Sequence record: NC_042116.1
Length of the DNA stretch: 64,000 bases
Strand: one strand, 5' to 3'
How positions within the stretch are numbered: position 1 is the stretch's first letter; every line of letters begins with the position of its first letter. A program made the translations under genes and the position numbers. Shown in pieces: positions 10,198 to 63,150 of the stretch. The notes under the pieces were generated by a model. The model was not told the DNA's origin. It ran no database searches and worked only from the letters and a program-made list of their open reading frames with translations.

Positions 10198-11565
10198 ATG
10201 TTCCTTGATGAAATTAAACACGTTCCGTTTCCTAGTTATAAATCATTAGAAAAGGCACGTACTGAATCATCTAAATCAATTAATCCAACAACATATGATC
10301 GTTATAAAAAATATCATTATCCAGTAGGTACTGAATTTCGTTTAGCAAAAGCTATTGATTCTTTAATTGTTAAAATTAAAAAGGTAATTAAATATGTCAG
10401 TTAAATTTACTCCAGTAGTAACGTCGTTAACAAATACACTTGTTGTTGAATTAGAATACGAACATGGTGATGCAGATGCAACTACATATGACTATGCATC
10501 CATCTCAGTACTTCCTGAACAGAAACAAACTATTGGGGGATTGCTTTCAATTATTGAGCATGGTTTAGAATGCCAGAATGCCGAACGATATGATGACACT
10601 ATTGATCCATTTTTTGTTGATGAAACAGTAACCTATGACAATGACCAAGGTATTCCATTAGTTGGAGTTGAAATTCGTTTTGGTTTTGATTATAATGCTC
10701 CGAAAGAGAAAGGAACTGTAATTGAAGTTGATCATGACCAGCAATATATTATTGTTCGTTCAGCAACGGGTGAAGTACACCAATTAGAATTTGATGAACT
10801 TGAAGATTGTATTACTTCATCGATTGGTATTATGGTAATGGATGGTAGTGAAATCAGCTTTACATATAATGGTATTAGTGTTAACATTGGTAGTGTTGGT
10901 GATTGCACAGTTGACCAGCAATATAATGCATCAGGTGGTATTAACGCAGTTTATTACTATGATGAAAATGGTATTAAATACATTGTAACTGATTATTAAA
11001 ATTTGCGGGAACGCTTGACAAACTGCCAAACACCCCGTTAACATAGGGGGTTGTTTATGAAGTACTTTTATGAAGTATTAATTGTATTAGTAATTTTGGT
11101 TGGTCTTATTGCTTTCTGGTTAAAAAGTTTATTAATTTCAATACTAGGAATATTAATATTCTTAGTTGGATGTTTAATTGAATACGTTGTTAATAGGATA
11201 AAAACATGAAACATTTTCTTGAAGTATTATTTGTTGCTATTGCAGTAGTTGCTATGATGTTAGGTTATACAGTAATTGCAATTTGGTCAGCAATGTTTGC
11301 TATTATCTTTTGGGCTGCTCCTAATTCATCAGTTAAAAAAACTCCTGAAGATTATCTTAATGAATCTCGTAAATTAAACGTATCAGGAGCAGAGGTTGAG
11401 TTTGAATTTTTATCGGATAAAGGTAAAACTTTTACAGTTAAATTAGAACCTCATTTGTATATTAATGATGATATGCTTATGGATAGTTTGGTAGAATATA
11501 TCGTTAAACACACTGGAATTCAAACCAGTTCTGAACGTTTAAATATCATTTCTATAAAAAAATAA
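10198..11565 (+). CDS. hypothetical proteins (10198-10404; 10394-10999 EHGD family; 11206-11565 membrane-anchored)
   Basis: ORF track; RBSs; hydrophobic N-terminus in 11206. Confidence 0.75.
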
Positions 11566-13967: not shown

Positions 13968-14089
13968 AAAATAGCTTGACATGATGATTTGAATTTGATA
14001 TAATGTATATCACATCGACGGATGATAAACGTAACTCTGGTACTTATGATTAAGTACTTTTTTGAAAATAAAATATAAGGGCTTTATAA

Positions 14090-15094
14090 ATGGCTAAGAA
14101 CACAATTACTGATATTGGCGAAGTTGAACGTACTGTGAATTATATCAAGTTCCAGATCTCTCAAGCTGATGAGCAGCTTGCACCATTCGCTAACAGCGAT
14201 AAGCCAAAGATTTGCTATGCACATCTGTTGGAGTGGAAAAAGCAGTTGCAATCTGAACTGTATGAAATCCGTCAGGCTCAGCAGAAAGCACGTCATAACA
14301 ATCCACACAAGTAATAAGCCATGCCGCCAACAATGCTGGCGGCGTCTTTTAAGTGATAACAAGAGTATATTATAATGAAAAGTGCAACAGCGTTAAAAAA
14401 TATGAATCAGCGTATTCAAACATTACGTTCTCAACGGGATTTAGCTTGGTCAGATTGGAGTAAGTTAAATAGTATTGAGACTAAAACCAAAGATGAATCA
14501 AAAGATCTATCTAAAATTTCAGGTTTTATTAGTAAATTAAATTATGAAATTCGCGGTTTGGAATTGTCTTTTAATGAATTGAAAAAACAAGTCATTGATG
14601 AAATCATTTTGTCTTAATAAAAAATGGGGTTAGTTATGGGTGTGATAGTTATTTACTGTATATTAGGTTCCCTTGGTTTATTCACATTGTATATGTTTGT
14701 AGTAACATCTGCAATGGGGACAGAACGACTTAAAACTTCTCAGTACTTTATGTCTTCATTGAGTTATTGTGAAGAAGCAACAACTAAAATTAATTTGTTG
14801 ATTGATAAGTATGAAGCAGGGCTTATTAAAGCAAAATTAAAAAATAATGTAATTGAATTTACTGAAATGGAAAAAAATATTCCAGCAGGTGAAATCTGGA
14901 TAGCAAATAAATATTTTTCATATGGTCAGTTACATCGTTATGGTGCGAATGGAAATATCTCTTGGCAATGTAATAAACCAAGTTTAAAAACTTTTAAACG
15001 AATTATTAAACTTGAAAAACAGCTAAACGTTGCTCATCAAGAACCAGTACCGAAAAGTGCAAAATCAACAGATGAGCCTGTAATTTTGGACTAA
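14090..15094 (+). CDS. hypothetical proteins (14090-14314, 14375-14617, 14624-15094)
   Basis: ORF track; sigma70-like promoter TTGACA-17-TATAAT near 13977; hairpin GCCGCCA/TGGCGGC at 14323-14343. Confidence 0.75.
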
Positions 15095-15197
15095 GGGCGT
15101 AATTGCCCTATTTTAATTAAGAGATTTAAAATATACATTTGAGAACTTCATGGTATGGGAAAAGTAGTAAATTTCTTTCAAATGTTATCGTAAATAT

Positions 15198-15227
15198 TTG
15201 AAACAACTAAAAAAATTGTGGTATAAT
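15198..15227 (+). promoter_or_regulatory. RNA-gene promoter class
   Basis: TTGAAAC-N14-TGGTATAAT upstream of Y-like RNA. Confidence 0.8.
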
Positions 15228-15244
15228 ATAGTACATAAGGCAAC

Positions 15245-15360
15245 GGAATCTTACAGCAAAAATACTAATTTTGATGAAAACGAAACGACGAGGTTCGAAT
15301 CCTCACCCACGAATTGCCTTATTATTAGTGGGAGCATGGTGCTGGATAAACAAAGATTCC
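15245..15360 (+). ncRNA. YrlA-like RNA (topology 2, permuted tRNA body)
   Basis: GGAATCT/AGATTCC ends, TACAGCAA, GAGG-TTCGAAT-CCTC T arm, CCCAC/GTGGG closed acceptor, AGC-ATGGT-GCT D arm. Confidence 0.8.
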
Positions 15361-15380
15361 AAAATTTAAGTTAGAAAAAT

Positions 15381-15410
15381 ATGAAACAAATCAAAAATTT
15401 GTGGTATAAT
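15381..15410 (+). promoter_or_regulatory. RNA-gene promoter class
   Basis: ATGAAAC-N14-TGGTATAAT. Confidence 0.8.
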
Positions 15411-15422
15411 ATAAGAAGTAAA

Positions 15423-15533
15423 GCGGGATGGTGATTGATGAAAGCTGTTATTTGATTCTAGACAATCATAATAAGCGAGTAATAGAACAGGGTTCTTAAT
15501 ATCACATGGGTTCAAATCCCTGTCGCTGCACAA
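15423..15533 (+). pseudogene. degenerate tRNA-like element, possibly an eroded topology-3 member
   Basis: 3' T arm GGG-TTCAAAT-CCC and TCGCTGC-A-CAA end; internal TGATT-ctagac-AATCA hairpin; 5' acceptor strand poorly matched. Confidence 0.4.
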
Positions 15534-15543
15534 AAGCAACAAA

Positions 15544-15662
15544 TGAAATCTTACAGCAAACACAACATTTTTTCCTTGCATAGAAAAACGGTGGGGTTCG
15601 ATTCCCCAACATCCAAGTTGCTTTTTAGGATGTGTCTGGACGACCGTATGACACAGATTTCA
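15544..15662 (+). ncRNA. YrlA-like RNA (topology 2) with Ala-like CTTGCAT loop
   Basis: TGAAATCT/AGATTTCA, TACAGCAA, TGGGG-TTCGATT-CCCCA, ACATCC/GGATGT, GTC-TGGAC-GAC. Confidence 0.8.
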
Positions 15663-15667
15663 GTACT

Positions 15668-15745
15668 GTTCCGTTAGACAAATTGGTATAGTCACCACAC
15701 TTTCAATGTGGATTTCTGAGGGTTCAAGTCCCTCACGGAACGCTA
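15668..15745 (+). tRNA. tRNA-Glu(UUC), 3' end CTA
   Basis: GTTCCGT/ACGGAAC, CCACA-CTTTCAA-TGTGG. Confidence 0.9.
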
Positions 15746-15746
15746 A

Positions 15747-15861
15747 AGGATTCGTACAGCAACAATAAACTCTTAAAATTCAATTGGTGAAAACAACCTT
15801 GCAGTTCGATTCTGCTTCCACAATGCGTGGATCTGGTGGTGGATAGAAAAAACCGAATCCT
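15747..15861 (+). ncRNA. YrlA-like RNA (topology 2)
   Basis: AGGATTCG/CGAATCCT, TACAGCAA, TTG-GTGAAAA-CAA hairpin, GCAG-TTCGATT-CTGC, TCCAC/GTGGA. Confidence 0.75.
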
Positions 15862-15899
15862 GATTTTAATTAAGAAGTACTAAAGAATTTGATACACAC

Positions 15900-16052
15900 G
15901 GATTTATACAGCAAACATAATCCTAAAATAAAACATACGATAATGTTATTAACTCGGAATTCGTTCCTTTCGTTAGTACTTGGCAACTTGGGTACTTAAA
16001 TAAGTTGTATCACCTCATGTGTATCGGATTAGTGGTGATTATAAATAAATCC
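15900..16052 (+). ncRNA. Y-like family RNA, long multi-hairpin variant without obvious tRNA body
   Basis: GGATTTA/TAAATCC, TACAGCAA; internal AACAT/ATGTT, AGTAC/GTACT, ATCACC/GGTGAT helices. Confidence 0.65.
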
Positions 16053-16088
16053 AGTAAATCAAAAGTACCTTTATCGGTACTTTTTTAT

Positions 16089-16181
16089 GGAAGATTGGCA
16101 GAGTTTGGTTTATTGCACAGGTCTTGAGTACCTGCGGGGGTTAATAGCCCTCCGTGAGTTCGAATCTCACATCTTCCTCCA
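16089..16181 (+). tRNA. tRNA-Ser(UGA), atypical loop and discriminator
   Basis: GGAAGAT/ATCTTCC-T-CCA; CAGGT-CTTGAGT-ACCTG; long variable arm. Confidence 0.85.
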
Positions 16182-16199
16182 AATTTTATGTAGTACAAT

Positions 16200-16277
16200 G
16201 GGGTACGTAGCTCAGTCTGGTAGAGCAGCCATGCGAAAACGGTGTGTCGGTGGTTCGAATCCACTCGCTCCCCACTA
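16200..16277 (+). pseudogene. pseudo-tRNA (disrupted anticodon arm)
   Basis: Canonical D and T arms; GCC/GGT stem with 10-nt loop ATGCGAAAAC; mismatched acceptor; CTA end. Confidence 0.6.
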
Positions 16278-16278
16278 A

Positions 16279-16335
16279 GGAATCTAGCAGCAACCATAAC
16301 CCAATCAAACTTTTAATTTGACAATTATGGATTCC
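16279..16335 (+). ncRNA. minimal Y-like RNA (topology 1) displaying a Lys(UUU) anticodon stem-loop
   Basis: GGAATC/GATTCC, TAGCAGCAA bulge, CCATAA/TTATGG, TCAAA-CTTTTAA-TTTGA (16305-16321). Confidence 0.8.
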
Positions 16336-16358
16336 AGTTATTTTAAGTTGAGAATAGC

Positions 16359-16763
16359 ATGACGGATAACGAAAAACTTGAAAATATATTAATTGAAGCA
16401 TTGACAATAATTAATACTTCAACATATAATTTTGAAACGTCCAAAGACGATTCAAAATCTAGATTTGTCTTATGCGGTAAAAGAGCACAACTTAAGTTGT
16501 ACTTTTCTGCCAAATATGGTGAATTAAGTATAGAATTTATTCATCACTTGATTGGAGATACCCTATCATTTCAGATTAATTATTATGATGATTCGGACGA
16601 AGATGATGATTACCATAATTTATATGGTGAAATACGTATTCCAAGAACTGAAGAACAATACTTTCAGTACTACACAATTCAAGATCATGTTTTCTCTTTA
16701 GAGTTTTATAAATTATTAGAAAACATAATGAACGAATTATTGGTAAAGTGGCAGAGCGGCTGA
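16359..16763 (+). CDS. hypothetical protein, EExxFQxxT family
   Basis: PRTEEQYFQYYTIQD; true stop overlaps downstream tRNA-Ser. Confidence 0.75.
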   Translation: MTDNEKLENILIEALTIINTSTYNFETSKDDSKSRFVLCGKRAQLKLYFSAKYGELSIEFIHHLIGDTLSFQINYYDDSDEDDDYHNLYGEIRIPRTEEQYFQYYTIQDHVFSLEFYKLLENIMNELLVKWQSG

Positions 16764-16835
16764 ATGCAACCGCTTGGAAAGCGGTCAGGTTAGGTGATAC
16801 TAGCCTCGTAGGTTCAAATCCTATCTTTACCGCAA
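16742..16835 (+). tRNA. tRNA-Ser(GGA), 3' end CAA
   Basis: GGTAAAG/CTTTACC-G; ACCGC-TTGGAAA-GCGGT; long variable arm. Confidence 0.92.
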
Positions 16836-16882
16836 AAGTAATAACCTCCTTATTAAAGAATACATACCCATAGGAGAATATT

Positions 16883-17239
16883 ATGTACGAGAAAGATGAT
16901 GGTCCATTAACAGATGAACAATTGTGTATTATTCGTGAAATGAATAGTCATTTAGAACAATCTAATTTAAGTATAGACTTGGATTGGTTAAATAGTGAAA
17001 AACAAGGAAATGCAATGTATTACGACTACTATTACAAAATTGATGGTGAACTTCGTCGTCATACCAGTAATCAAGAGTTAACTGATGCGGAAATCAATAA
17101 TATTTTTGGTGCAAGCAAACATGTGGTAATGCTTACTCCAATTGTTTTTGAACGTGAGATTAGTACGGAAGATAAGTCTGGTAATAAAATTAAAAGTACT
17201 GAAAAAGTACACGTAGGATTTTTAGGTTACGTGGAATAA
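16883..17239 (+). CDS. hypothetical protein
   Basis: GGAG RBS; ORF track. Confidence 0.7.
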   Translation: MYEKDDGPLTDEQLCIIREMNSHLEQSNLSIDLDWLNSEKQGNAMYYDYYYKIDGELRRHTSNQELTDAEINNIFGASKHVVMLTPIVFEREISTEDKSGNKIKSTEKVHVGFLGYVE

Positions 17240-17284
17240 TATAATTTATTGGATTCGAAAGAATCCTTTTTAAGTGAGATGATT

Positions 17285-17509
17285 ATGGATAATCAACATA
17301 AAAAGATTAAAGGGTATCGTGACCTTTCTCAAAAAGAAATCGATGCAATGAATGAAATTAAACAACTAGCAGCTACTGTTGAAGAGTTAATTGAAAAACT
17401 TGAAGGAACTGACTCTATTGATAAACGCTGGCTTGCTATTGCAAAAACAGATTTACAAAAAGGGTTCATGTCAGCAGTGCGAAGCGTGGCTAAACCAGAT
17501 TCCTTTTGA
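17285..17509 (+). CDS. acb2: anti-CBASS protein Acb2 homolog (cyclic oligonucleotide sponge)
   Basis: From ATG17285: [20 protein letters not shown]...[27 protein letters not shown], near-identical N- and C-terminal motifs to Acb2 as recalled. Confidence 0.88.
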
Positions 17510-17517
17510 GGAAAATA

Positions 17518-17898
17518 ATGCATCCAATTGATAACCATGCTGATATAATTGATGATGTTATAACTGAAATACTTGAAATTTATACGTGTAAAGTTGAAGT
17601 TTATAATTATGGTAATTTGTTTTCACAGCACGGCTATAGTACTAAACATAATATAAATTATCATATAAATGCAAAGTACTATAATAATAATTCAAAAAAT
17701 GGTAGACGAGCTAATAGTCTTGTGATAGAATTTAAATTCACTAACAGAGTTCCTAAAGGACTAAAAGATTATTATAGATTATCAATACCTGAAATACAAA
17801 GTATTACAGAAGAACGACATTTTCAATTAATGTTAGTTACTGATGATATGTACTTGGATTATGAAGTTATAAATAAATTACGTACACATATTATGTAA
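17518..17898 (+). CDS. hypothetical protein, EExxFQ family
   Basis: ITEERHFQLMLVTD. Confidence 0.75.
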   Translation: MHPIDNHADIIDDVITEILEIYTCKVEVYNYGNLFSQHGYSTKHNINYHINAKYYNNNSKNGRRANSLVIEFKFTNRVPKGLKDYYRLSIPEIQSITEERHFQLMLVTDDMYLDYEVINKLRTHIM

Positions 17899-17907
17899 AA
17901 AAGTTTT

Positions 17908-17961
17908 TAGAATCTAACAGCAATCAAAACTCATTGGATATATGAAAAAAAATAGATTCTA
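17908..17961 (+). ncRNA. minimal Y-like RNA (topology 1)
   Basis: TAGAATCTA/TAGATTCTA, ACAGCAA, TCAT-TGGATAT-ATGA apical hairpin. Confidence 0.75.
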
Positions 17962-17966
17962 GTATT

Positions 17967-18041
17967 TGGGAATTATCTCAGCGGTAGAGAGCACAACTGA
18001 TAATTGTGAGGTCACTGGTTCAAATCCAGTATTCCCAACTA
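17967..18041 (+). tRNA. tRNA-Ile(GAU), 3' end CTA
   Basis: TGGGAAT/ATTCCCA; CACAA-CTGATAA-TTGTG. Confidence 0.9.
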
Positions 18042-18137
18042 AGTAGTTCAGTACTGAAATATGTACAGTGAAATTATTCAACACTATAGGTAGAACTTTG
18101 AATGAATCAGTAAGCCTATAAGTAACTATATTAAATT

Positions 18138-18268
18138 TGGAATTCAACAGCAATCTTCACTTACTAAAAACAGCTACCTCACGGTTTGTAGGTTCGAGTC
18201 CTACCTTGTACTTTCGAGTACATGTGGTGAAATCGGTAAACACGGCTGTCAAAAAGAAATGAATTCCA
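18138..18268 (+). ncRNA. YrlA-like RNA (topology 2) built from a permuted tRNA-Leu-type body
   Basis: TGGAATTCA/TGAATTCCA, ACAGCAA, ACAGC/GCTGT stem, ACC-TCAC-GGT variable arm, GTAGG-TTCGAGT-CCTAC, TGTAC-TTTCGA-GTACA closed acceptor, Leu-type D arm TGGTGAAATCGGTAAACAC. Confidence 0.85.
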
Positions 18269-18321
18269 GTATTAATTAAGACATAAATATTCTTATACAT
18301 TATTTTTGTAGGAATATAGAT

Positions 18322-18534
18322 ATGGAAATGAAAAAGTTGATGGAAGAGATATCTTCCATAATGGAAGGACAATTACCATGATATTATTATCACGGTAGCT
18401 CTAGACCAATATCAAATTTCAGTGATGAGTTTGTGGGAGAACGTTTTATAATAGTATATAATCCAGCAAGCATAAAAGTTATAAACACTTTCAATCCAGA
18501 AGAAGCTAAGCAGAAACTACTTGGAAGTGATTAA
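18322..18534 (+). pseudogene. interrupted remnant resembling an ADP-ribosyltransferase (ART-PolyVal-like) domain
   Basis: In-frame TGA at 18379; downstream YYHGSSRPISNFS and IVYNPASIKVI motifs directly juxtaposed (core deleted). Confidence 0.4.
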
Positions 18535-18540
18535 AAAATT

Positions 18541-18660
18541 TGGAATTCAACAGCAAATCATTCAAAACACGTAGCATGTCGTAGGTTCAAGTCCTACCAG
18601 TACTTAATTGTACTGTAGCTCAGTCGGGAGAGCAGCCACCTTAAAAAGAAATGAATTCCA
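18541..18660 (+). ncRNA. YrlA-like RNA (topology 2)
   Basis: TGGAATTCA/TGAATTCCA, ACAGCAA, GTAGG-TTCAAGT-CCTAC, CAGTAC-TTAATT-GTACTG closed acceptor, TA-GCTC-AGTCGGGA-GAGC D arm. Confidence 0.85.
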
Positions 18661-18776
18661 GCCTAATTAAATTCACCAGGCGTACTATGGTGTGACAAGA
18701 TAGCATGTTATCACGTCAGAATAGAATACGTATTAGTCCCTTGAAAGGACTTCTGTAAACTCAATTTATAATATTT

Positions 18777-18830
18777 TAGAATCTAACAGCAATCAAAAAT
18801 CATTGGATATATGAAAAAAGATAGATTCTA
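18777..18830 (+). ncRNA. minimal Y-like RNA (near duplicate of 17908-17961)
   Basis: TAGAATCTA/TAGATTCTA, ACAGCAA, TCAT-TGGATAT-ATGA. Confidence 0.75.
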
Positions 18831-18854
18831 GCTTTAATTGAATAAAACTAAATT

Positions 18855-18916
18855 TGGAATCCAGCAGCAACCATAAATGAAATCAACTGTTAATTGAAAA
18901 ATCAAAATGGATTCCA
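18855..18916 (+). ncRNA. minimal Y-like RNA displaying an Asn(GUU) anticodon stem-loop
   Basis: TGGAATCC/GGATTCCA, AGCAGCAA, TCAA-CTGTTAA-TTGA (18883-18897). Confidence 0.8.
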
Positions 18917-18936
18917 GTATTTTTAATATACATTGA

Positions 18937-19443
18937 ATGGACTCAATGAAAAAAGATATAGATAATAGTAAAGTTATTTCTATGATAGAACAAGGTCGTT
19001 CTGTTAGAGATATAGCTAAAGAGTGTAATGTCGCTTATTCAACAATGAACAAGTATTTCAAAAATAATAATTTGAAATCACAATATATGATCCAATTAGA
19101 ATCACCTATATGTTTTAAACATAATGTTGAGTTTACTAAACGTAATAATTCTAATAAGAGAATATGTTGGAAATGCAATGCTGAAAATGTGTCGAAACAT
19201 AGAAAAAAATTGAAAATAAAATCAGTAGAATATCTTGGTGGTAAATGTGAACGTTGTGGATATAATAAATCAATGTCAGCATTAGAGTTTCATCATAAAG
19301 ATCCTAGTGAGAAAGATTTTGAAATTTCAGCGAAAGGTATTACACGTTCTTGGCAAAAGATACAAATTGAGCTTGATAAATGTATGTTGTTATGTTCAAA
19401 TTGTCATCGTGAAATTCATGATGAACTTAATTTAGAAAATTAA
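18937..19443 (+). CDS. HNH endonuclease with N-terminal HTH
   Basis: GRSVRDIAKECNVAYSTM HTH; GGKCERCGY...LEFHH...LLCSNCHREIH. Confidence 0.88.
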   Translation: MDSMKKDIDNSKVISMIEQGRSVRDIAKECNVAYSTMNKYFKNNNLKSQYMIQLESPICFKHNVEFTKRNNSNKRICWKCNAENVSKHRKKLKIKSVEYLGGKCERCGYNKSMSALEFHHKDPSEKDFEISAKGITRSWQKIQIELDKCMLLCSNCHREIHDELNLEN

Positions 19444-19451
19444 GAAAAAAG

Positions 19452-19481
19452 TTGAAACGCCACAAGAAATTGTGGTATAAT
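19452..19481 (+). promoter_or_regulatory. RNA-gene promoter class
   Basis: TTGAAAC-N14-TGGTATAAT upstream of tRNA-Asn. Confidence 0.8.
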
Positions 19482-19504
19482 ATAAGTAAGAAAAACAAAT
19501 AGTT

Positions 19505-19581
19505 GGTCACATAGCACAATTGGTTAGTGCGTTCGCCTGTTAAGTGAGAGGTTATAGGTTCAAGTCCTATTGTGACCGCAA
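19505..19581 (+). tRNA. tRNA-Asn(GUU), 3' end CAA
   Basis: GGTCACA/TGTGACC-G; TTCGC-CTGTTAA-GTGAG. Confidence 0.92.
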
Positions 19582-19626
19582 AGTAATGTTTGGGCGGTTT
19601 AATAATACATAAATCCAAACATTATA

Positions 19627-19669
19627 AAGAATCTTTCAGCATTAACACGGTGAAAATATATAGATTCTT
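19627..19669 (+). ncRNA. shortest Y-like family member
   Basis: AAGAATCT/AGATTCTT, TTCAGCAT, GGTGAAAA loop. Confidence 0.55.
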
Positions 19670-19673
19670 GATT

Positions 19674-19749
19674 AGGCTCATGGTGTAATTGGTTAACACA
19701 CGAGATTTTGATTCTCGCGTTCAGGGTTCGAGTCCTTGTGGGCCTGCTA
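19674..19749 (+). tRNA. tRNA-Gln(UUG), 3' end CTA
   Basis: AGGCTCA/TGGGCCT-G; CGAGA-TTTTGAT-TCTCG. Confidence 0.9.
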
Positions 19750-19765
19750 ATTTAAAAGGTTAATT

Positions 19766-19996
19766 ATGTTCGAAGATGATGAAGTACAATTAGTACCATT
19801 TTTAGTACAGGGTAAATTGAGAAAATCTGAATATATGGTTGATGAACCAACATATCGTGATATTCAAAATCTGGTAATGGCTTCCTCTGAAGAAGAAGCT
19901 GAAGATAAGTTTATTAAACATTATGAAAGTAAATCAAGTTCATATGATGTTGATTATTCAGTTGTCAATGTAGTAGTTAACAAAACCCTAATTTAA
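19766..19996 (+). CDS. hypothetical protein
   Basis: AAGG RBS; ORF track. Confidence 0.75.
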   Translation: MFEDDEVQLVPFLVQGKLRKSEYMVDEPTYRDIQNLVMASSEEEAEDKFIKHYESKSSSYDVDYSVVNVVVNKTLI

Positions 19997-20137
19997 AGTT
20001 TTCATTTCCTTGGTGAAAACAAGCTTGTATGATTCCCCCAGCTTGTAAAATTATATGACGGGAACCGCGTTGCACCTGTACAGGTCAGATTGTAAAGATC
20101 AAGTATGTACAGTACTGAGAGCGGCAGTACGAAAAAT

Positions 20138-20222
20138 GCGGGATTAGCTCAGTGGTAGAGCACTTGCCTTCCAAGCAAGAGGCGAATAGGTTCCATCGGT
20201 TCGAATCCGATATTCCGCTCAA
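20138..20222 (+). tRNA. tRNA-Gly(UCC) with abnormal 15-nt variable region, 3' end CAA
   Basis: GCGGGAT/ATTCCGC-T; CTTGC-CTTCCAA-GCAAG; variable AGGCGAATAGGTTCC. Confidence 0.85.
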
Positions 20223-20338
20223 ATTAAACAAACAATAAGGTAAATCCTATGATGCTATAGAAAAACAGTACTGGTCCTCCTGATAACTTTAATTCAGAAC
20301 AAAACACTAAATTAAATATTATCCAAAAGGAACATACC

Positions 20339-20665
20339 ATGTTAAACAAAGAACAATATATTACTGTAAAAAATACTTGGAAATTAGAAAAAGAGCATAA
20401 CATTTTCGACCATGTGGTTTATAATGTTATTCGTGGCCTACCATCAGATAATGGGTTTGCACCAATTACTGATAAAGGAAAACTTCAAGCAAATAATAAC
20501 GACCCGTATAATATGTACAACTATGCAGTTCTTGAATTGCATTATGAGTTGAATGAAAAACGATACAATTATGAAAAAACAGTACAACATTATTCTAAAC
20601 TATTTGGCATTGAATTTACACCTGAACTTATCGAAGTAGTACTTACTTTGATTAAAGTTAAATAA
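20339..20665 (+). CDS. hypothetical protein
   Basis: AAGGA RBS; ORF track. Confidence 0.75.
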   Translation: MLNKEQYITVKNTWKLEKEHNIFDHVVYNVIRGLPSDNGFAPITDKGKLQANNNDPYNMYNYAVLELHYELNEKRYNYEKTVQHYSKLFGIEFTPELIEVVLTLIKVK

Positions 20666-20673
20666 CAGAATTA

Positions 20674-20737
20674 AAGAATCCAACAGCACCCATAAATGAA
20701 ATCAACTGTTAATTGAAAAATTCAAAAATGGATTCTT
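20674..20737 (+). ncRNA. minimal Y-like RNA with Asn(GUU) stem-loop (copy of 18855)
   Basis: AAGAATCCA/TGGATTCTT (compensatory change vs 18855), ACAGCAC, TCAA-CTGTTAA-TTGA. Confidence 0.8.
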
Positions 20738-20845
20738 GTTTTTATTTGGAAGTCTCATGAAAGATAATTTTTATGAAGATTTAAGATTTAGATATATTGA
20801 AGTACATGAATTTGACGTTATAGCACTGAACGTGCTATAATAGCT

Positions 20846-20922
20846 GGAGCCGTAGTTCAGTTGGTTAGAACGCTTGCCTGTCACGCAAGAGGCCGTGGGT
20901 TCAAGTCCCATCGGTTCCGCAA
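20846..20922 (+). tRNA. tRNA-Asp(GUC), 3' end CAA
   Basis: GGAGCCG/CGGTTCC-G; CTTGC-CTGTCAC-GCAAG. Confidence 0.93.
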
Positions 20923-20936
20923 AAATAAGGAAAGAT

Positions 20937-21197
20937 ATGAATAAGAAAGCTAAAAAACGTATTTTTAATACTGTGATAGAAACATCATCAGAACATTGTA
21001 AGTACAATTACTGGTATCATAATCTTCTTAGAAAAACAATTTTACTTATGTCTAGAGGAAAGTACCGTAGAACTGAAAAGGATATTGTACAACTACTTAC
21101 TAGAAATCATGGTAAAGAAAGATATAATCCTACACCAGAAGAACACTCTGAATGGGTTCGATTAGAACAAAGTGTTGGTTTGATGTGTGGTAAATAA
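20937..21197 (+). CDS. basic hypothetical protein
   Basis: AAGGA RBS before ATG20937; the longer ORF-track start runs through tRNA-Asp. Confidence 0.65.
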   Translation: MNKKAKKRIFNTVIETSSEHCKYNYWYHNLLRKTILLMSRGKYRRTEKDIVQLLTRNHGKERYNPTPEEHSEWVRLEQSVGLMCGK

Positions 21198-21200
21198 ATT

Positions 21201-21677
21201 GGTAATAAAGAGTGTAAGGGTTAGTACTTGGTATCATATTCCCCCTCTACCTTCTTCCCCCATTATTTGGGTTCTAGTCGTAGACACAATGTAGTACTTT
21301 ATTACCCGCGAATTAATATTTTATTGTGGGGTGGTAAGAGTAAGATACCGATTCAAACAAGGGTCAGAAAGATCCACTTAACCCGTTTTGAAACAATAAA
21401 ATATCCCGAAAGGGTGACGATGTGAATAGTGCATATCCTTGTAGTATGGGACAGTACTACATTTTTATAAATAAATTGGAATAGAGCATGAGACTGCCCT
21501 CACTATTCGACGCTTTAAGTAGCTTGCAGACGTTTACTGTACGTAATAAATATGATAGTAGGTTGCAATTCATATTGTTGTACTGTATCATGCAACCACT
21601 TTGGATAAAGGTCAAGAAACTAGATTCTCTTTATCGACGCTTTAAGTAGCTTTCTAGAGAGTACTTTCGGGTACTCA
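21201..21677 (+). ncRNA. candidate large structured RNA(s) with a duplicated 19-nt motif
   Basis: Long-range helices GGTAATAAAG/CTTTATTACC, ATGTAGTACT/AGTACTACAT, GGTATC/GATACC; CCC-GAAA-GGG; TCGACGCTTTAAGTAGCTT at 21507 and 21634; GAGTACT-TTCG-GGTACTC. Confidence 0.55.
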
Positions 21678-21696
21678 CCCAAATAAAATAAAACAT

Positions 21697-21772
21697 GTTC
21701 TTATAGCTCAATTGGATAGAGTTGCCGCCTACGAAGCGGTCGATATAGGTTCAAATCCTTTTAGGAACACAA
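21697..21772 (+). tRNA. tRNA-Arg(ACG), 3' end CAA
   Basis: GTTCTTA/TAGGAAC; GCCGC-CTACGAA-GCGGT. Confidence 0.88.
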
Positions 21773-21789
21773 AATTAAGGTAATTAAAG

Positions 21790-23173
21790 ATGAAATCACT
21801 AGTAGCTATGGTAAAAGACAAAAAAGTCTATTTTAGCCATTATCAAAACAACGAGTTATGGTACAGTACTGAATGCGGATTTATGTTTCCGGTTCCCGTA
21901 GCTGATACTGGTAACGCAGAATTTAAACAAGAAGATAAAGCCACTTTCTTCATGCGTTGGATTCGCAAACATCTTGAAATGATCGAGAATGAGCGAGTTC
22001 AGTTTGAATGAGAGAACCAATGTCTGATGAGAACTGGAAAGAAGTACATACTATAATTAACAATTACATAACCAACGGTGAAAATACCGTTTATGGATAT
22101 GTAACGTATGATTACTTTCCAAAGTACTGTTATATGATGGCAACTGGCTTTAGTTTTACAAATGAATACGTTCATTTTAACGGAAGCCGCCGCATTATAG
22201 ATCAAGTACTGTCAGAAGAATCTTTCTTTCAACAAAGTACAATCTATGATTTTTATGACTTAACACTCGAAGAAATCATAGCATTAAAAGAAATCTATAA
22301 ATTCATGCTAGGGGATTTTCCGTGAGGAAAATCCTTTTTTCGTTTCTGGAGTTCATGTTGAACGATATTAATACATTACTTAGACAATGCATAAAAATTA
22401 TCAAATCGTTTGACCATCCTATCACACGTGATGAAATTCAAATGTATGGTCTTGATAATTATATTCGAAATTTAAGAATTACTATGTATAACACCAGTAC
22501 TGATGTGTTATTTGATTTTGGTAGATATACACATGATAAAAAGTTTAATCATATTGGAATAATAAAAGTATCTAGTGAAATATTATGGTACATTTATTTT
22601 GGTGGAAATATAAGATTCAAAACTAATCTTACTGAAGAAGAAATATTTCAACAAAGTACTATTAATAATTATTATGATTTAGAGCCGGATATTGCAAAAA
22701 ATATATCAGAATTGATTTCATTATTAGAACACTTATGGAAATAAATTATGAAAGTTTTTGAAACATGTTTTTTATATGCAAGTACGGGTCTTGCAGCTAA
22801 AATTATTAGAAGTAAATACGACGATAAAATTCTGTTCTCTTATAAAGTACTATTAGATTTTGATTCTTCAATACAACAAAATGTATGTATATTCATAGTT
22901 ATTGTATACGTTGAAGATGAGACTTTTATTTTTGCATTTGGTATATCTGAAGATTATCCTGATATTGGAATTTCAGTTATGAAAGTACAAGGTAATAAAA
23001 CATTACATTTAAGTGATGTATGCAACGTAGAAGATTTGGAAGCACGTTTGTTCCAAATAGAAACTATTGTAGATGTGCATGATTTAGATACTACTATGAT
23101 AGATAAAATGCATAAGATTCGTGAAATATATTTGAAGCAAAAAGATGAAACAGTACTGAATAATATGGTATAA
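21790..23173 (+). CDS. hypothetical 21790-22011 plus three EExxFQxxT-family paralogs (22008-22325, 22322-22744, 22748-23173)
   Basis: LSEESFFQQSTIYD, LTEEEIFQQSTINN, LEARLFQIETIVD. Confidence 0.78.
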
Positions 23174-23174
23174 T
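23145..23174 (+). promoter_or_regulatory. RNA-gene promoter class
   Basis: ATGAAAC-N14-TGGTATAAT upstream of Pro-Pro-Val tRNA cluster. Confidence 0.8.
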
Positions 23175-23195
23175 ATCAGTACTTTAGAAACAAAT

Positions 23196-23272
23196 CTCCG
23201 ATTAGCTTAGTCTGGTTAAAGTGTTCCGTTTGGGGCGGAAAAACGAACGTTCGAATCGTTCATTGGAGACAA
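23196..23272 (+). tRNA. tRNA-Pro(UGG), 3' end CAA
   Basis: CTCCGAT/ATTGGAG; TTCCG-TTTGGGG-CGGAA. Confidence 0.9.
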
Positions 23273-23274
23273 AA

Positions 23275-23351
23275 CTGTGCGTAGCTCAGCTTGATAGAGT
23301 AGGTTCCTTGGATGAATCGGGTCAGTGGTTTGAATCCACTCGCACAGACCA
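23275..23351 (+). tRNA. second tRNA-Pro(UGG)
   Basis: CTGTGCG/CGCACAG-A-CCA; GGTTC-CTTGGAT-GAATC. Confidence 0.85.
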
Positions 23352-23354
23352 ATT

Positions 23355-23431
23355 CCTTGTTTAACTCAGTTGGTTAGAGTGCCATCTTTACACGGTGGAA
23401 GTCACTAGTTCGAATCTAGTAACAAGGACAA
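23355..23431 (+). tRNA. tRNA-Val(UAC), 3' end CAA
   Basis: CCTTGTT/AACAAGG; CCATC-TTTACAC-GGTGG. Confidence 0.9.
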
Positions 23432-23449
23432 ATAATATAGGAAAGTACT

Positions 23450-24952
23450 ATGAAACGCAATAGACAAATGATATTAAGTACTGATTCAGTAACTGACGTT
23501 AAAGTTACTAAAATCAAAAATAAGTACCATGCACGACTATTCGTTAATGGTATCTTATCTGATGAAATGGCATGTTCCTTACGTTCAGATATTGGTTGGA
23601 TTTGTCGAGAAATGATGCGTTGGTGTGATAAGTTAGGTGCAGGTAATGCACATACTACATCAGCTCGACGCCGACATAATGAAGACTGTTCTCCACGTGT
23701 TAAAGTACTTTATTATAATGAGATTAAAAATAACATTGAAAAACACAAGGTTAATAAAAATGTTTAAAGAGAGTGTTCTAGAAATAGTTCTTAATGATAT
23801 TATTTCTGAAGTAAAATTGAAAGACTCAATGAAGCATGATTATGAAATGCAATATGCCCGTCTAATCACTGAACTAACTACAATGATAGACCCTAATACG
23901 GGAATGGAACCTTGTATCACCATTAATGAAAAAATCTTTGGTGATACACGTGGTAGTGGTTTTAGAATGACTTCATCTAAGATTTATACTTGGAAAGGAA
24001 TTGCTGACACTTCATCAATAACTGTACATTTCAATAAAGGTTATAAACAAGAACTTTTAGATTTTGGATATACCGAAGAAGAAGTTATGTACTTAGAGAA
24101 AATTTTAGAAGTAATTAAAGAACATGAAAGTGAGTTTTAAATGCTAACTGACATAGAATTAGATTATCTTCAACGTATGGTTGATGTTGAATTTGATTTT
24201 GACTCATGTGGATATGGGCAATACGGTGGTGGTTGTAGCTTTAACACTGAAATTGATAATTTATATTATAATTTATATTATTGTCATACTGGATTTCAAA
24301 TAACAATAAGCAATATAGAAAGAACAAGTAGATTAGCCATAAGATTAAATGATGTAGCTGGATGGGATGTTGAAAATAAAAAAGTTCTATACAGAAATAA
24401 AGTCTATTCAACATCATGTGGTTGTATTATTTTGGATAAAGATGAAATACCAGAAGAAACTTATAATCTAGTACAAAAAGTACTGAATAAGTTAGAAACA
24501 CATAAAGATACATGGAAGAAGTATTATAAAGATGAATAATATTCAAAAACATAAGGCCAAGAATAATGGAAAATTATCTTCCTAAATCCGAATTAATAGT
24601 TGGAAGAACTTATAGTGGTTCATGTCGTAATTCTGATACGGCTGTCTGGACTGGTACACAGTTTACTTATGAACGAGAAAAATTTGGTTCAACCTATAAT
24701 GATAGTGTTAATCATCCAGAAGATGATGATAACTATGATTTGTTTTATCCCACAGAACTTTTGAAAGAAACATATCTACCTAAGTATAAATTAGTAATAG
24801 GTGCATGGTATCACGGATATGGTTGCTCATCAGAAGCAATGTGGATTGGTAATATGTTTATGTATAATTATGGAAATACTGAAAAAGAAGCAAAACATGT
24901 TGATGATAGTACTGAAAATTGCTTCATTCCGTACAGAAAAATAGATACTTAA
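23450..24952 (+). CDS. hypothetical proteins (23450-23767, 23760-24140, 24141-24539, 24566-24952)
   Basis: Packed ORFs with overlapping stop/start. Confidence 0.75.
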
Positions 24953-27135: not shown

Positions 27136-28080
27136 ATGAATATAACATTATTAATAGTATCGGGTATGTTAATGTTAGCAGCTATATTTGTCTATCTAGC
27201 AAATAAAGAAATCGCAGCTAAATTATATGAAAACACATATCGTAAGAGTGAAGGGTTAGATACAAAAAGTCCATATTGTGTAATTAGAGAGAAACAAAGT
27301 CAATACTCAGACGATTATGTGTATTATATCGGAGAAGGAACACAGAAAGTTGATAATAGAAGATTTTTTAAACTGTCTGAATTAATGCCATACCTTAATG
27401 AACTTGAAAAGATAAAAGGTTATGAGTTAACTAAATTTTAATGAGGTCAATATGTCACTAACATCATTAGTACTGTTAATGTTTGTAACTGCATGTATTA
27501 CATTAATAGCCAATAAATTGATAGCAGCAAACATATACAAAAAAACTGTGTTTGATATTCAAGGTAAAAAAAGTCCTTATGGAATATCAATTGAACAAGG
27601 TAAATCCAAATGGGGATATTGTATTACTAAGAATGGCAAAGTTCAATTTTCAATGAATGGTAGTGCACCTGTTTATCACACACTGGAAGACGTACTTAAA
27701 GCTATTAATATTCTTGAAAAGTTAGAAGGTTATATACCAACTACGATTAGTGTTGAACAGGAATAATTATGAGTATTTTAATCATTTGTAGTACTATTAT
27801 GTTTATTTCATCATTAATTGCTTTGATGGTAAATCGATCAATTGCAGCTAGCATTTATAAAAGAACGATAGATGATATTAATCAATCTGAACTAAAGCCA
27901 AGTCCATATGGTGTTTCTCGTGAACCTCGTGGTGATGGATCATGGGGATATTGTATTACTAAGAATGGTAAAATACAATTCACCAGTGATAAAGCTCAAA
28001 TATTTTCTAATATTAATTCAATAATTCGTGAAATTAATACATTAGAAAAAATAGAAGGATTTAAATTAACTCGTGTTTAA
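27136..28080 (+). CDS. three tandem membrane-anchored paralogs (27136-27441, 27452-27766, 27769-28080)
   Basis: N-terminal TM helix, shared N+.IAA.+Y..T, SPYG, WGYCITKNGK, LEK+EG motifs. Confidence 0.82.
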
Positions 28081-62877: not shown

Positions 62878-63150
62878 ATGTTTCTCCATACAAATCTAGT
62901 ACTCTATTGTACTTGTAATCATATTTACCCACTTTATACCCCTCTTGTACCTTTTTAATACTATAACATGTACCACAATATACCCCCTAAAACCTCTCCA
63001 GTACTTCATAGCAAGCACGTGTTTGCTTCCTGTAGTATCGCTTCGCGATATCGAAAGGATTCAAACAAGACAAAACTACGTTTCTTAAAAGTTATGTATA
63101 TATTAACAGTACTATATGTTTGTACATATATATTGAAATATCTAACCTTG

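Follow-up and report, generated by a model that had tools for sequence, protein, structure and literature searches.

Phage tRNA clusters are known to encode stable small RNAs that are not tRNAs; species 1 and 2 (rnaC and rnaD) of phage T4 and such RNAs of phage T5 are co-transcribed and processed with the neighbouring tRNAs. Circularly permuted tRNA genes, in which the 3' half lies ahead of the 5' half and the flanking sequences pair with each other, occur in Cyanidioschyzon merolae and some archaea. YrlA-type Y RNAs are modular: the two ends form a terminal stem of approximately 10 bp, the Ro-binding motif GNCGAAN0-1G follows the 5' strand, and a second, tRNA-like module contains a T arm, a closed acceptor-like hairpin, and a D arm (PMC4201824). 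Phage tRNAs can also counteract host defence; T5 tRNA-Lys neutralises PARIS, a tRNA-cleaving defence (PMC11464382).

We analysed the final 64 kb of the genome of Yersinia jumbo phage fHe-Yen9-04 (NC_042116.1), hereafter the window, in which an earlier note had described five minimal scaffolds displaying anticodon-like stem-loops. These five hairpins belong to an undescribed family of approximately 15 small RNA genes in the window and are its smallest members.

A constant handle and its variable modules

Twelve open elements (E1–E12) were located at 15245–20737, all on the + strand; six contained only a hairpin, five a tRNA-like body in which a T arm, a closed acceptor hairpin, and a D arm followed one another, and one something else. 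Three more members (C1–C3) were tRNA-like genes at 7544–9497, whose anticodon arm contained the handle in the form of a closed hairpin. Comparison of the members showed that each element consists of a constant handle and a variable tRNA-derived module, the latter being either a complete tRNA-like elbow that lacks an anticodon loop or a hairpin on its own; three hairpins copied an anticodon loop. The family is restricted to Eneladusvirus/Mimasvirus-type phages, has no Rfam entry, and is unannotated. The motif GRAWTYYNNCAGCA, with one mismatch allowed, occurred 12–16 times per 10–40 kb in five related phages, compared with an expectation of 0.5–2.9. When six phages were taken together, every open element (n = 63) lay on the transcribed strand and 60 of the 63 contained CAGCAA. 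Element positions were syntenic across two genera, and no target-site duplications were seen at the elements in the sequence.

The handle comprised P1, a helix of 8–10 bp in which both ends of the element pair, and CAGCAA, located 0–3 nt (usually 1 nt) past the 5' strand of P1. It was strictly conserved and was the sole invariant part of the elements; CAGCAA did not vary in the A1 alignment. The 12 nt following the CAGCAA core were poor in G (0–10% per position), and the last seven of the 12 nt preceding the P1 3' strand contained 57–81% A, compared with a background of 37%. In the short elements, 92% of P1 cells were paired, and both sides had changed in 22 cells, compared with 7.6 in shuffles; none of the 500 shuffles reached 22. 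Sliding the partner strand as a control decreased P1 pairing to 23–49%. The long elements had differing yet complementary P1 cores, such as GGAUUCG/CGAAUCC, GGAUUUAU/AUAAAUCC, and AAUUACAG/CUGUAAUU. Judging from these paired substitutions, P1 is an RNA helix.

The closed handle was a circular permutation of the open one: inside the anticodon arm of three tRNA-like genes of normal order, a loop joined the arms, which were adjacent and in reverse order along the sequence, with the strand preceding CAGCAA coming second. C1 (7544–7657, + strand) scored 38.6 bits against the tRNA model over 114 nt, and its closed handle read GAUUCUU-gauu-AAGAAUC, followed by uua-CGGCA. The handle of C2 (8367–8497, + strand) was a 9-bp hairpin followed by a-CAGCA, and the heptamer CUGUAAA, identical to the tRNA-Tyr loop, adjoined the 3' strand of the anticodon-like stem. 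C3 (9377–9497, + strand; 46.4 bits over 121 nt) came from tRNA-Lys, and its closed handle was followed by CAGCAA. Its mini stem-loop of 3 bp had the loop AUGAUAA in fHe-Yen9-04 and CUUUUAA in pEa_47; the identity of this loop thus changes from one close relative to another, and the closing pair has changed in a compensating way.

E1 (15245–15360) began approximately 18 nt past a strong + strand promoter at 15198–15227 (TTGAAA, an 18-nt spacer, and TG-TATAAT), a type repeated in the phage (repeat families D3 and D9). Its P1 (GGAAUCUU/AAGAUUCC) was followed by CAGCAA, a canonical T arm, a closed hairpin, and a small D-like hairpin, and orthologues were present in all five other phages. A second promoter at 15381–15410 headed a run consisting of a C4-like RNA, E2, tRNA-Glu, E3, and E4, after which a terminator-like hairpin with a U run was located at approximately 16062–16087. 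E2 (15544–15662), with a T arm, a closed acceptor-like hairpin, and a D-like arm, ended 5 nt before tRNA-Glu, and E3 (15747–15861), also tRNA-like inside, started 3 nt after it. The P1 core of E3 was swapped to AGGAUUCG/CGAAUCCU and read AAGAAUCG/CGAUUCUU in the CBB orthologue, which is a compensatory change. E4 (15900–16052; 153 nt) had P1 GGAUUUAU/AUAAAUCC followed by CAGCAA and a multi-hairpin interior that was not tRNA-like; its P1 differed but still paired in CBB (GGAUUCAG/UUGAAUCC) and GAP32 (GGGAUUUAA/UUAAAUCCC). The dedicated promoters and the tRNAs 3–5 nt away are signs that the elements are genes.

E7 (18137–18269) enclosed a permuted tRNA-like body: between the two strands of the anticodon stem lay, in this order, a variable arm, a T arm, an acceptor hairpin with a closing loop of the UUCG type, and a D arm. 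Compensatory changes were found in its P1, anticodon-like stem, and variable arm, and its matches in 19 records were unannotated in all 19. Overall, the tRNA-like fold was conserved: its T stem and acceptor hairpin, as well as the anticodon-like stem and the variable arm, showed compensatory changes.

Likeness to Y RNAs and other described RNAs

The interior of E8 (18540–18661) matched the tRNA-like domain of Rfam YrlA (RF02553) at model positions 24–84 with 36.2 bits (E = 1.7e-5), the gathering threshold being 69 bits; no other member gave a meaningful Rfam score. The Y RNA beside the Ro gene of mycobacteriophage Bxz1 reached 32.5 bits in the corresponding stretch of the model, and its ends form a 10-bp terminal stem whose 5' strand is immediately followed by a conserved motif. 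The elements thus resemble YrlA-type Y RNAs (PMC4201824) in their modularity, in the terminal stem followed by a motif, in the tRNA-like second module, and in the existence of smaller sisters, which in the YrlA system is YrlB with the conserved 5' motif. However, the motif of the elements is CAGCAA, and the canonical GNCGAAN0-1G was absent from them. A Ro/Rsr (TROVE) gene was not detected in the phage clade: tblastn with Bxz1 Ro returned 356 phage records, none from this clade, and the gene was not found within the window or the neighbouring loci examined. In addition, there are 12–15 elements per genome compared with one or two Y RNAs, some modules are isolated anticodon-like hairpins, and certain tRNA-like genes contain a permuted version of the handle.

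The stable RNAs of T4 and T5 resemble the elements by description, as non-tRNA RNAs encoded among phage tRNA genes; we know of no sequence or handle common to both. Permuted tRNA genes share with the elements the leading tRNA 3' half and the flanks that pair with each other, whereas the elements lack a bulge-helix-bulge motif and a recoverable anticodon loop, and a stable loop resembling a tetraloop closes their acceptor stem. Phage tRNAs that neutralise defences are likewise RNAs of tRNA clusters, and the host nuclease acts via the anticodon stem-loop. These tRNAs, however, are complete and functional, escape cleavage, and replace the host tRNA, whereas the elements cannot be decoded; in addition, the tRNA-Lys of fHe-Yen9-04 itself keeps the ordinary stem-loop (GUUGA-CUUUUAA-UCAAU).

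Hairpins with anticodon loops

The five hairpins described previously were recovered at the quoted positions and with the quoted stem-loops. E5 (16279–16337), which started 5 nt after an aberrant tRNA-like gene (16201–16273), displayed UCAAA-CUUUUAA-UUUGA with the loop of tRNA-Lys(UUU). E10 (18854–18917), 28 nt upstream of an HNH endonuclease gene, displayed UCAA-CUGUUAA-UUGA with the loop of tRNA-Asn. E12 (20674–20737; core CAGCAC, repeat family D12) was a 92% identical copy of E10, started 8 nt after the g452 stop codon, and had a different interior at the same site in pEa_47. E6 (17907–17962), which ended 4 nt before tRNA-Ile, and its near-duplicate E9 (18776–18831) displayed UCAU-UGGAUAU-AUGA; the E6 stem covaried to UUCU-CGGAUAU-AGAA in GAP32, XbC2, and Kaldavass. 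The sixth small element, E11 (19627–19669), was a minimal one of 43 nt with the core CAGCAU and a 19-nt interior, and ended 4 nt before tRNA-Gln. At its site, pEa_47 carried a 57-nt hairpin-type element, and GAP32 a 64-nt element with a Pro-like loop, UUUGGGU.

As had been claimed, the loop heptamers were identical to those of the phage tRNA-Lys(UUU) and tRNA-Asn; the stems of these tRNAs (UUCGC-CUGUUAA-GUGAG in tRNA-Asn) were unlike those of the hairpins. The hairpins are real, and the earlier note was also right that the five elements contain no tRNA body, but it missed the shared frame and the larger members (15245–16052 and 18137–18661), sister elements among which have a tRNA body without an anticodon loop.

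Loop identity by itself is not beyond chance in AT-rich DNA. In simulated sequence, a stem of at least 4 bp with a loop identical to any of the 24 anticodon loops of the phage occurred approximately five times per strand per window, and the same search in the real window, outside tRNA genes, gave eight on the + strand and seven on the – strand. Three of the eight + strand cases fell within the approximately 340 nt of the framed elements, compared with a length-scaled expectation of approximately 0.03. The Asn-type 18-mer TCAACTGTTAATTGAAAA was identical in all six phages compared, and the Lys-type hairpin recurred in five of the six. Because of this clustering, identity, and recurrence, the hairpins are non-random. 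TGGATAT is not a canonical anticodon loop, since position 33 is G; YGGAUAU was the commonest hairpin loop. CBB kept the Lys-type stem with a non-anticodon loop, CCUAACC. The inner hairpins were thermodynamically weak (0.0 to –1.5 kcal/mol), and only 3 of the 15 window members had a canonical anticodon loop.

Possible functions of the elements

Our best reading, which we hold tentatively, is that the elements may be modular, Y-RNA-like tRNA mimics with a putative protein-docking handle that serve as adaptors or decoys. The strong early-type promoters would drive their transcription jointly with that of the tRNAs and, as several elements lie 3–5 nt from a tRNA, the elements could be released by tRNA-processing enzymes. 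P1 would shield both ends of the released RNA, and the internal loop, which consists of CAGCAA and the A-rich stretch, might be the docking site for one phage or host protein. If the tRNA-like module engages tRNA-recognising proteins, the RNA would act as an adaptor or decoy that links enzymes directed at tRNA, perhaps tRNA-cleaving defences of the host, to the factor bound at the handle, or alternatively keeps such enzymes off the real tRNAs. The module is swapped at syntenic sites and cut to 19 nt in E11; therefore, the handle alone may carry the function.

A rather unlikely alternative is that the handle punctuates mixed tRNA–mRNA transcripts in cis, as a processing or stability signal, with interiors that matter little; P1 would join both borders for an endonuclease or protect the 3' ends of upstream RNAs. 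Elements do lie at ORF/tRNA and tRNA/tRNA borders, 3–8 nt from their neighbours, the handle is the only invariant part, and one site holds the 43-, 57-, and 64-nt versions in fHe-Yen9-04, pEa_47, and GAP32. A handle-like hairpin without CAGCAA at 17251–17266 resembles a terminator and fits the same idea. Nevertheless, the tRNA-like interiors of E7 and E8 were kept through compensatory changes across genera, and the Asn-type interior was invariant. Furthermore, E1 and the E2–E4 run have their own promoters, the latter with its terminator-like hairpin, which leaves little else to punctuate, and the closed handle inside tRNA-like genes separates nothing.

The earlier note proposed that the Lys(UUU) and Asn(GUU) hairpins soak up anticodon nucleases of the PrrC, PARIS, or colicin E5 type, sparing the tRNAs, which we consider unlikely. 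The shared loops, their conservation across phage genera, and the construction of the family from tRNA parts agree with this proposal, and the loop switch in C3 is what an arms race would produce. PrrC recognition depends on a modified wobble base, which a bare hairpin may not acquire. The proposal also leaves unexplained the invariant CAGCAA handle and the members without an anticodon loop, and it fits poorly with the low number of canonical anticodon loops (3 of 15), the differing stems, the CBB loop, the G33 of the commonest loop, and modules that are replaced or almost missing at the corresponding site of close relatives. In its favour, an Acb2/Tad1-family anti-defence gene is located among the elements, and PARIS AriB recognises the tRNA-Lys anticodon stem-loop (PMC11464382). 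The phages of this clade carry tRNA-repair and tRNA-maturation genes, including a CCA-adding enzyme and RNA ligases, one being a T4-type RNA ligase 1 (PMC5259590).

It is improbable that the elements are selfish or decaying DNA with no function at the RNA level, either MITE-like repeats with terminal inverted repeats of 8–10 bp or tRNA pseudogenes spread by gene conversion. Similarity between copies ended at the element borders (E6/E9 and E10/E12), the termini are inverted repeats, and modules were shuffled between sites, as such DNA would show. The single orientation of the 63 open copies, the hexamer on one side only, the swappable P1 cores that keep pairing, the synteny, and the lack of visible target-site duplications argue against it, and insertion cannot yield the closed version because its arms are adjacent and in opposite order. 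We regard as very improbable a reading in which the members are tRNA genes that are split, permuted, or interrupted by introns and yield functional tRNAs through splicing or ligation at the handle: E7 and E8 do carry the tRNA 3' half ahead of the 5' half, C1–C3 score as tRNAs with insertions of roughly 40–50 nt, C2 without its insertion yields the loop CUGUAAA on a 4-bp stem, and the clade encodes the above ligases and CCA-adding enzyme, but the acceptor hairpins are closed by 4–6-nt UUCG/GAAA-type loops, which are stable caps and not processing linkers, neither E7 nor E8 allows an anticodon loop to be reconstructed in any orthologue, only 3–4 bp with mismatches make up the anticodon-like stem in C2, in C3, and in the Lys-type gene of XbC2, the insertion point varies among members (26/27 or 31/32), and the hairpin-type members contain no tRNA.

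Anticodon-loop hairpins and their common frame

Region 14000–24000 of the window was 100% identical to positions 304378–314378 of phage fHe-Yen9-04 (NC_042116.1; 354,378 bp; genus Eneladusvirus), so that the window covers the final 64 kb of this record. ARAGORN identified 24 tRNA genes in the window, and the Rfam tRNA model gave three further matches, two of which were overlong at 114 and 121 nt. An earlier note had read five hairpins at 16279–20737, none of them annotated in RefSeq, as candidate anticodon-nuclease decoys. The coordinates claimed for them were correct, and the loops CUUUUAA and CUGUUAA are the exact loops of the phage tRNA-Lys(UUU) and tRNA-Asn, respectively; the stems of the Lys- and Asn-type hairpins are unlike those of the real tRNAs.

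We estimated chance occurrence by first-order Markov simulation of the window, counting hairpins whose stem had 4 bp or more and whose loop exactly matched any of the 24 phage anticodon loops. Outside tRNA genes, the + strand held 8 such hairpins and the - strand 7. Because the simulation itself yielded approximately 5 per strand, loop identity by itself is weak evidence. Three of these hairpins lie inside approximately 340 nt of framed elements, where approximately 0.03 would be expected from the simulated rate scaled by length. The 18-mer TCAACTGTTAATTGAAAA was unchanged in all six phages compared (fHe-Yen9-04, pEa_47, CBB, GAP32, XbC2 and Kaldavass), and the Lys-type hairpin was present in five of them. 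Therefore, the hairpins exceed chance through their setting and conservation. The observation in the earlier note was thus confirmed, but its reading was too narrow; what is present is a family of modular RNAs that mimic tRNA, share a conserved handle and are new and specific to this clade.

The frame around each hairpin consists of the two ends of an element pairing as a helix of 8–10 bp, termed P1. It was found in all 12 open elements (E1–E12), which lie between 15245 and 20737, every one on the + strand. P1 typically has the strands UUGGAAUYYA and URRAUUCCAG, and the hexamer CAGCAA, which together with P1 forms the handle, is placed 0–3 nt (usually 1) 3' of the P1 5' strand. G is nearly absent from the 12 nt after the hexamer. 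In the 12 nt leading up to the P1 3' strand, the final seven are 57–81% A, versus 37% in the background. We collected 63 open elements from the six phages; all 63 are on the transcribed strand and 60 carry CAGCAA, the remaining three having CAGCAC or CAGCAT. The handle motif matched 12–16 times in CBB, GAP32, XbC2 and Kaldavass, compared with 0.5–2.9 matches expected, and no shuffle equalled the observed count.

In 33 short elements, P1 was paired in 92% of cells, and pairing fell to 23–49% once the partner strand was shifted by one to three columns. Both sides had changed in 22 cells versus 7.6 in shuffles, and none of 500 shuffles attained 22. In the long members, the P1 cores differ in sequence yet stay complementary: AGGAUUCG/CGAAUCCU in E3 and AAGAAUCG/CGAUUCUU in its CBB orthologue, GGAUUUAU/AUAAAUCC in E4 and GGAUUCAG/UUGAAUCC in its CBB counterpart, and AAUUACAG/CUGUAAUU in the closed Lys-type gene of XbC2. 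This kept pairing, together with the single orientation, the one-sided hexamer and the syntenic positions, argues for a family that acts at the RNA level and not as a MITE-like DNA repeat. It is probable that the members are functional structured RNAs.

Two sequences resemble parts of the handle. The CAGCAA with an 8-bp partner at 27516–27592 is coding sequence and was rejected. Just 3' of the g447 stop codon, a hairpin with a trailing U run, GGAUUC-GAAA-GAAUCC (17251–17266, + strand), has the P1 sequence as its stem and lacks CAGCAA; it resembles an intrinsic terminator.

Interiors of the open and closed forms

The handle encloses three kinds of interior. E5, E6, E9, E10, E11 and E12 contain a small, hairpin-only interior, E4 has a multi-hairpin interior of 130 nt, and E1, E2, E3, E7 and E8 enclose a permuted tRNA-like body. 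The permuted body begins with one anticodon-stem strand, the variable region and the T arm, and continues with an acceptor-like stem with a short stable closing loop, the D arm and the other anticodon-stem strand. For E1–E3 and E7, inspection and folding placed the T arm first, then the closed acceptor-like stem-loop and the D arm. In E7 and E8, the helices have been kept over two genera by compensatory substitutions, which affect P1 as well as the anticodon-like stem, variable arm and T stem; the acceptor hairpin has a wholly different sequence in the Mimasvirus orthologues and still forms. Among the hairpin-only members, the near-duplicates E6 and E9 have UCAU-UGGAUAU-AUGA, for which three other phages have the covarying form UUCU-CGGAUAU-AGAA. 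ARAGORN called no open element as a tRNA, nor did Rfam (RF00005) at threshold, and a cloverleaf combining an open acceptor stem with a 5-bp anticodon stem and 7-nt loop was not found.

The two long tRNA matches, C1 (7544–7657; 38.6 bits, 114 nt) and C3 (9377–9497; 46.4 bits, 121 nt), together with C2 (8367–8497), are circular permutations of the open design. C1 and C3 exceed a standard tRNA by approximately 40–50 nt, and their anticodon-like stems have 3–4 bp. All three genes have a tRNA body in normal order with an open acceptor stem, and on the 5' side of the anticodon arm an A-rich stretch leads into a loop-closed P1 and CAGCAA or a close variant. The circular order is common to the open and closed forms: anticodon-stem strand, A-rich stretch, P1, CAGCAA loop, other anticodon-stem strand. 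C3 is of tRNA-Lys descent, as its D arm, variable loop (UGGUC) and T loop all match. Its mini stem-loop is CA-CUUUUAA-UG in pEa_47 and CU-AUGAUAA-AG in fHe-Yen9-04, the closing pair compensating the loop change.

Two other tRNA-like sequences lie in the cluster. At 16201–16273 (+ strand), a 73-nt gene missed by ARAGORN scored 36.4 bits with the Rfam tRNA model; it has acceptor-stem mismatches and an aberrant anticodon arm, and its pEa_47 orthologue is annotated as tRNA-Ser(cga). The same site in CBB, GAP32, XbC2 and Kaldavass is occupied by a handle-bearing tRNA-like gene of approximately 120 nt, which has the Lys loop in GAP32, XbC2 and Kaldavass. The second sequence (15415–15537, + strand) is a degenerate tRNA-like RNA without the CAGCAA handle, directly 3' of the second strong promoter; its 3' end is like a T arm and acceptor strand followed by CAAA, and its 5' half forms no cloverleaf.

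Between relatives, the handle stays constant at fixed sites while the interior varies. The site before tRNA-Gln holds the 43-nt E11 in fHe-Yen9-04, a 57-nt hairpin-type element in pEa_47 and a hairpin with the Pro-like loop UUUGGGU in GAP32, and the site after g452 holds an Asn-type module in fHe-Yen9-04 and a different module in pEa_47. CBB kept the Lys-type stem with the non-anticodon loop CCUAACC, and a canonical anticodon loop is absent from most family members. This turnover fits a constant functional handle with exchangeable tRNA-derived heads, and it is compatible with the decoy idea without proving it.

Relation to Y RNAs, distribution and genomic setting

In a permissive Rfam scan, the E8 interior matched YrlA (Y RNA-like, RF02553) with 36.2 bits (E = 1.7e-5) at model positions 24–84, which constitute the tRNA-like domain; this score is under the Rfam gathering score of 69. 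As a yardstick, the Y RNA beside the Ro gene (gp220) of mycobacteriophage Bxz1 scored 32.5 bits at YrlA positions 23–87. The elements share with YrlA-type Y RNAs a tRNA-like domain ordered as T arm, closed acceptor-like stem-loop and D arm, and a terminal stem in which the two ends of the RNA pair, here the covariation-supported P1 of 8–10 bp. Their layout is also that of the Bxz1 Y RNA, in which a 10-bp terminal stem is followed directly on the 5' strand by the conserved motif GCCGAG. The proposed Ro-contact motif of Y RNAs near the 5' end is GNCGAAN0-1G (PMC4201824); the phage elements lack it and have CAGCAA at that place in 60 of the 63 copies.

No Ro60/Rsr (TROVE) gene was detected beside the phage elements. 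A tblastn search with Bxz1 Ro returned 356 phage records, including Vibrio, Agrobacterium and Sinorhizobium phages, and none from Yersinia, Erwinia, Serratia, Cronobacter, Pectobacterium or Xanthomonas jumbo phages; a search of the window, 44 kb of pEa_47 and 10 kb of CBB gave nothing better than E = 0.99. According to a review, TROVE proteins occur in just a small subset of jumbo phages (PMC7824862). Since the motif is CAGCAA and no Ro gene was detectable, we describe the elements as Y-RNA-like in architecture and do not assign them to the Y RNA family. The handle matched no ribozyme, riboswitch or other family in Rfam at the gathering threshold or at E values up to 10, the sole match being the YrlA body, and no description of the elements was found in the literature. 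They are a conserved, wholly unannotated class of small RNA genes, with 12–15 per genome in a clade of phages of 350–370 kb.

Orthologues of E7 were found in 18 phage records, all unannotated there, including Yersinia phages fHe-Yen9-03 and fHe-Yen9-04, Serratia phage BF, six Erwinia pEa_SNUABM phages, GAP32, CBB, XbC2 and Kaldavass. The adjacent gene g452 is distributed in the same way. A 19th match, a 24-nt stretch in the tRNA-Asn of a Streptomyces phage, is not an orthologue. In IMG/VR, multiple handle copies were confined to relatives of 354–378 kb, and single matches in contigs of 247–434 kb were rejected as they miss the 3' partner strand. A gapped exact pattern searched in genome_contigs gave four bacterial matches, all coincidences: two are an rsmG coding motif (MNLTAI...FLDS), and the other two stand alone, lacking both a tRNA and a further copy.

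A strong promoter of the phage's repeated type (TTGAAA, 18-nt spacer, TG-TATAAT) ends 18 nt 5' of E1. A second one heads a run comprising the tRNA-like RNA, E2, tRNA-Glu, E3 and E4, which terminates at a hairpin and U run at approximately 16062–16087. The 47-nt promoter consensus (TTGAAAC, approximately 15 nt, TGTGGTATAATAT) is repeated ahead of tRNA and small-RNA units, with + strand copies at 673, 2090, 15192, 15372, 19443, 23136, 31544 and 44281. Gaps of 3–5 nt separate E2 from the following tRNA-Glu, E3 from the preceding tRNA-Glu, E6 from the following tRNA-Ile and E11 from the following tRNA-Gln, and E5 begins 3–5 nt after the tRNA-like gene at 16201–16273. We infer that tRNA-processing enzymes may set the element ends and that P1 may protect them.

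Among the ten small proteins encoded nearby, scans against Pfam and PHROGs revealed no RNA-binding domain. The clade encodes a T4-type RNA ligase 1, a second RNA ligase, a tyrosyl-tRNA synthetase, a Thg1-like enzyme, a peptidyl-tRNA hydrolase and a CCA-adding enzyme, a heavy investment in tRNA biology that favours no reading of the elements over another. In the middle of the cluster, g448 (17285–17509, + strand; 74 aa), labelled merely 'Phage protein' in RefSeq, has a Pfam match to the Acb2/Tad1 hairpin domain (PF24729; E = 8e-20, 71 bits); this family comprises anti-CBASS and anti-Thoeris sponges for signalling nucleotides, and its presence likewise does not discriminate between the readings. 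The gene g450 (18946–19443, + strand), 28 nt 3' of the Asn-type E10, encodes an HNH endonuclease that has a resolvase-type helix-turn-helix domain at its N terminus, and Kaldavass has an HNH gene at the equivalent position.

Candidate functions and alternative readings

We tentatively propose that the elements are processed, stable small RNAs, in which the loop of CAGCAA and the A-rich stretch, adjoining P1, would dock one protein, and the tRNA-like head would engage tRNA-recognising proteins, making the RNA an adaptor or decoy; the mechanism as a whole has somewhat less than an even chance of being right. Should the handle bind a protein, the Y-RNA principle of a protein handle joined to a tRNA mimic would extend to phages without Ro protein, and the family would offer a simple means of studying the purpose of tRNA mimicry. 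A bolder version, which we consider speculative and unlikely, is a cassette-like array of RNA baits, with the constant protein-docking handle fused to swappable tRNA parts. These parts would be elbows, or Lys-, Asn- or Pro-type anticodon stem-loops, capturing host tRNA-targeting immune nucleases or passing them to a handle-bound phage factor, and this RNA-made counter-defence would have its modules swapped between sites as host defences change. Such an array would be related to Y RNAs while being independent of Ro; to our knowledge, it would also be the first RNA-based answer to anticodon nucleases. Work on defence and counter-defence has focused on phage tRNA clusters, and so far complete tRNAs alone have been considered.

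The elements could instead be a cis-acting processing or stability signal, which is also unlikely. Decoys in the narrow sense of the earlier note are a testable possibility that we regard as rather improbable. The loops are identical to the phage Lys and Asn loops, but the stems differ from those of the tRNAs, CBB carries a non-anticodon loop on the Lys-type stem, and most members have no canonical loop. Selfish or decaying DNA is very improbable; inverted termini are present as in a MITE-like repeat, whereas the 63 open copies share one strand and occupy syntenic sites in two genera, and no target-site duplication was seen in the window sequence. Spliced or permuted genes giving working tRNAs are hardly credible. 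A circularly permuted tRNA gene has a flanking processing motif, a 3'/5' acceptor linker that is removed and an intact anticodon loop, a combination not seen here; the linkers are capping loops of 4–6 nt (UUUCGA or UUAAUU in fHe-Yen9-04, CGAAA in pEa_47), and an anticodon loop could be reconstituted in none of six orthologues.

A tmRNA-like reading was rejected: short frames from the GCA in CAGCAA end in the loop UAA in E5 and E10 and not in the acceptor-arm members, which was taken as an effect of AT-richness. Rejected on sequence grounds only were an intron or bulge-helix-bulge splicing, a K-turn, a MotA box or other DNA operator, an RNase III site (given the too-short helices and oversized internal loop) and a retron-like branching G within AGC, as we know of no reverse transcriptase in the clade.

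GenBank records of related phages annotate tRNAs of 110–125 nt as Phe(aaa), Lys(ttt), Val, Ser(aga) and 'OTHER'. The handle motif matched those in the related-phage loci L002 (12811–12926 and 14461–14585), L003 (12011–12132 and 17248–17366) and L007 (3237–3358), which are probably not decoding; L003 has two more of these long annotated tRNAs, at 4959–5068 and 10310–10423. Annotated "intron-bearing" tRNAs, such as tRNA-Lys of 122–125 nt and tRNA-Phe of 116–122 nt, are likewise probably not decoding tRNAs, and phage tRNA counts should allow for such long handle-bearing genes.

Two further tRNA genes on the + strand were noted. The one at 2146–2221, a potential amber suppressor, has the anticodon CTA and the ARAGORN label 'Pyl', and its conservation extends to pEa_47 and CBB. 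The tRNA-Gly(UCC) at 20138–20220 has 82–83 nt, with approximately 10 extra nucleotides apparently in the variable region, a feature unusual for a glycine tRNA; the CBB copy has 73 nt. Near the end of the linear record, 63139–63358 contains approximately 14 tandem copies of a 10/20-bp unit (AGTACTATCA / AGTATAATTG), which could represent either a repeat with a terminal or packaging role or a series of promoter-like boxes.
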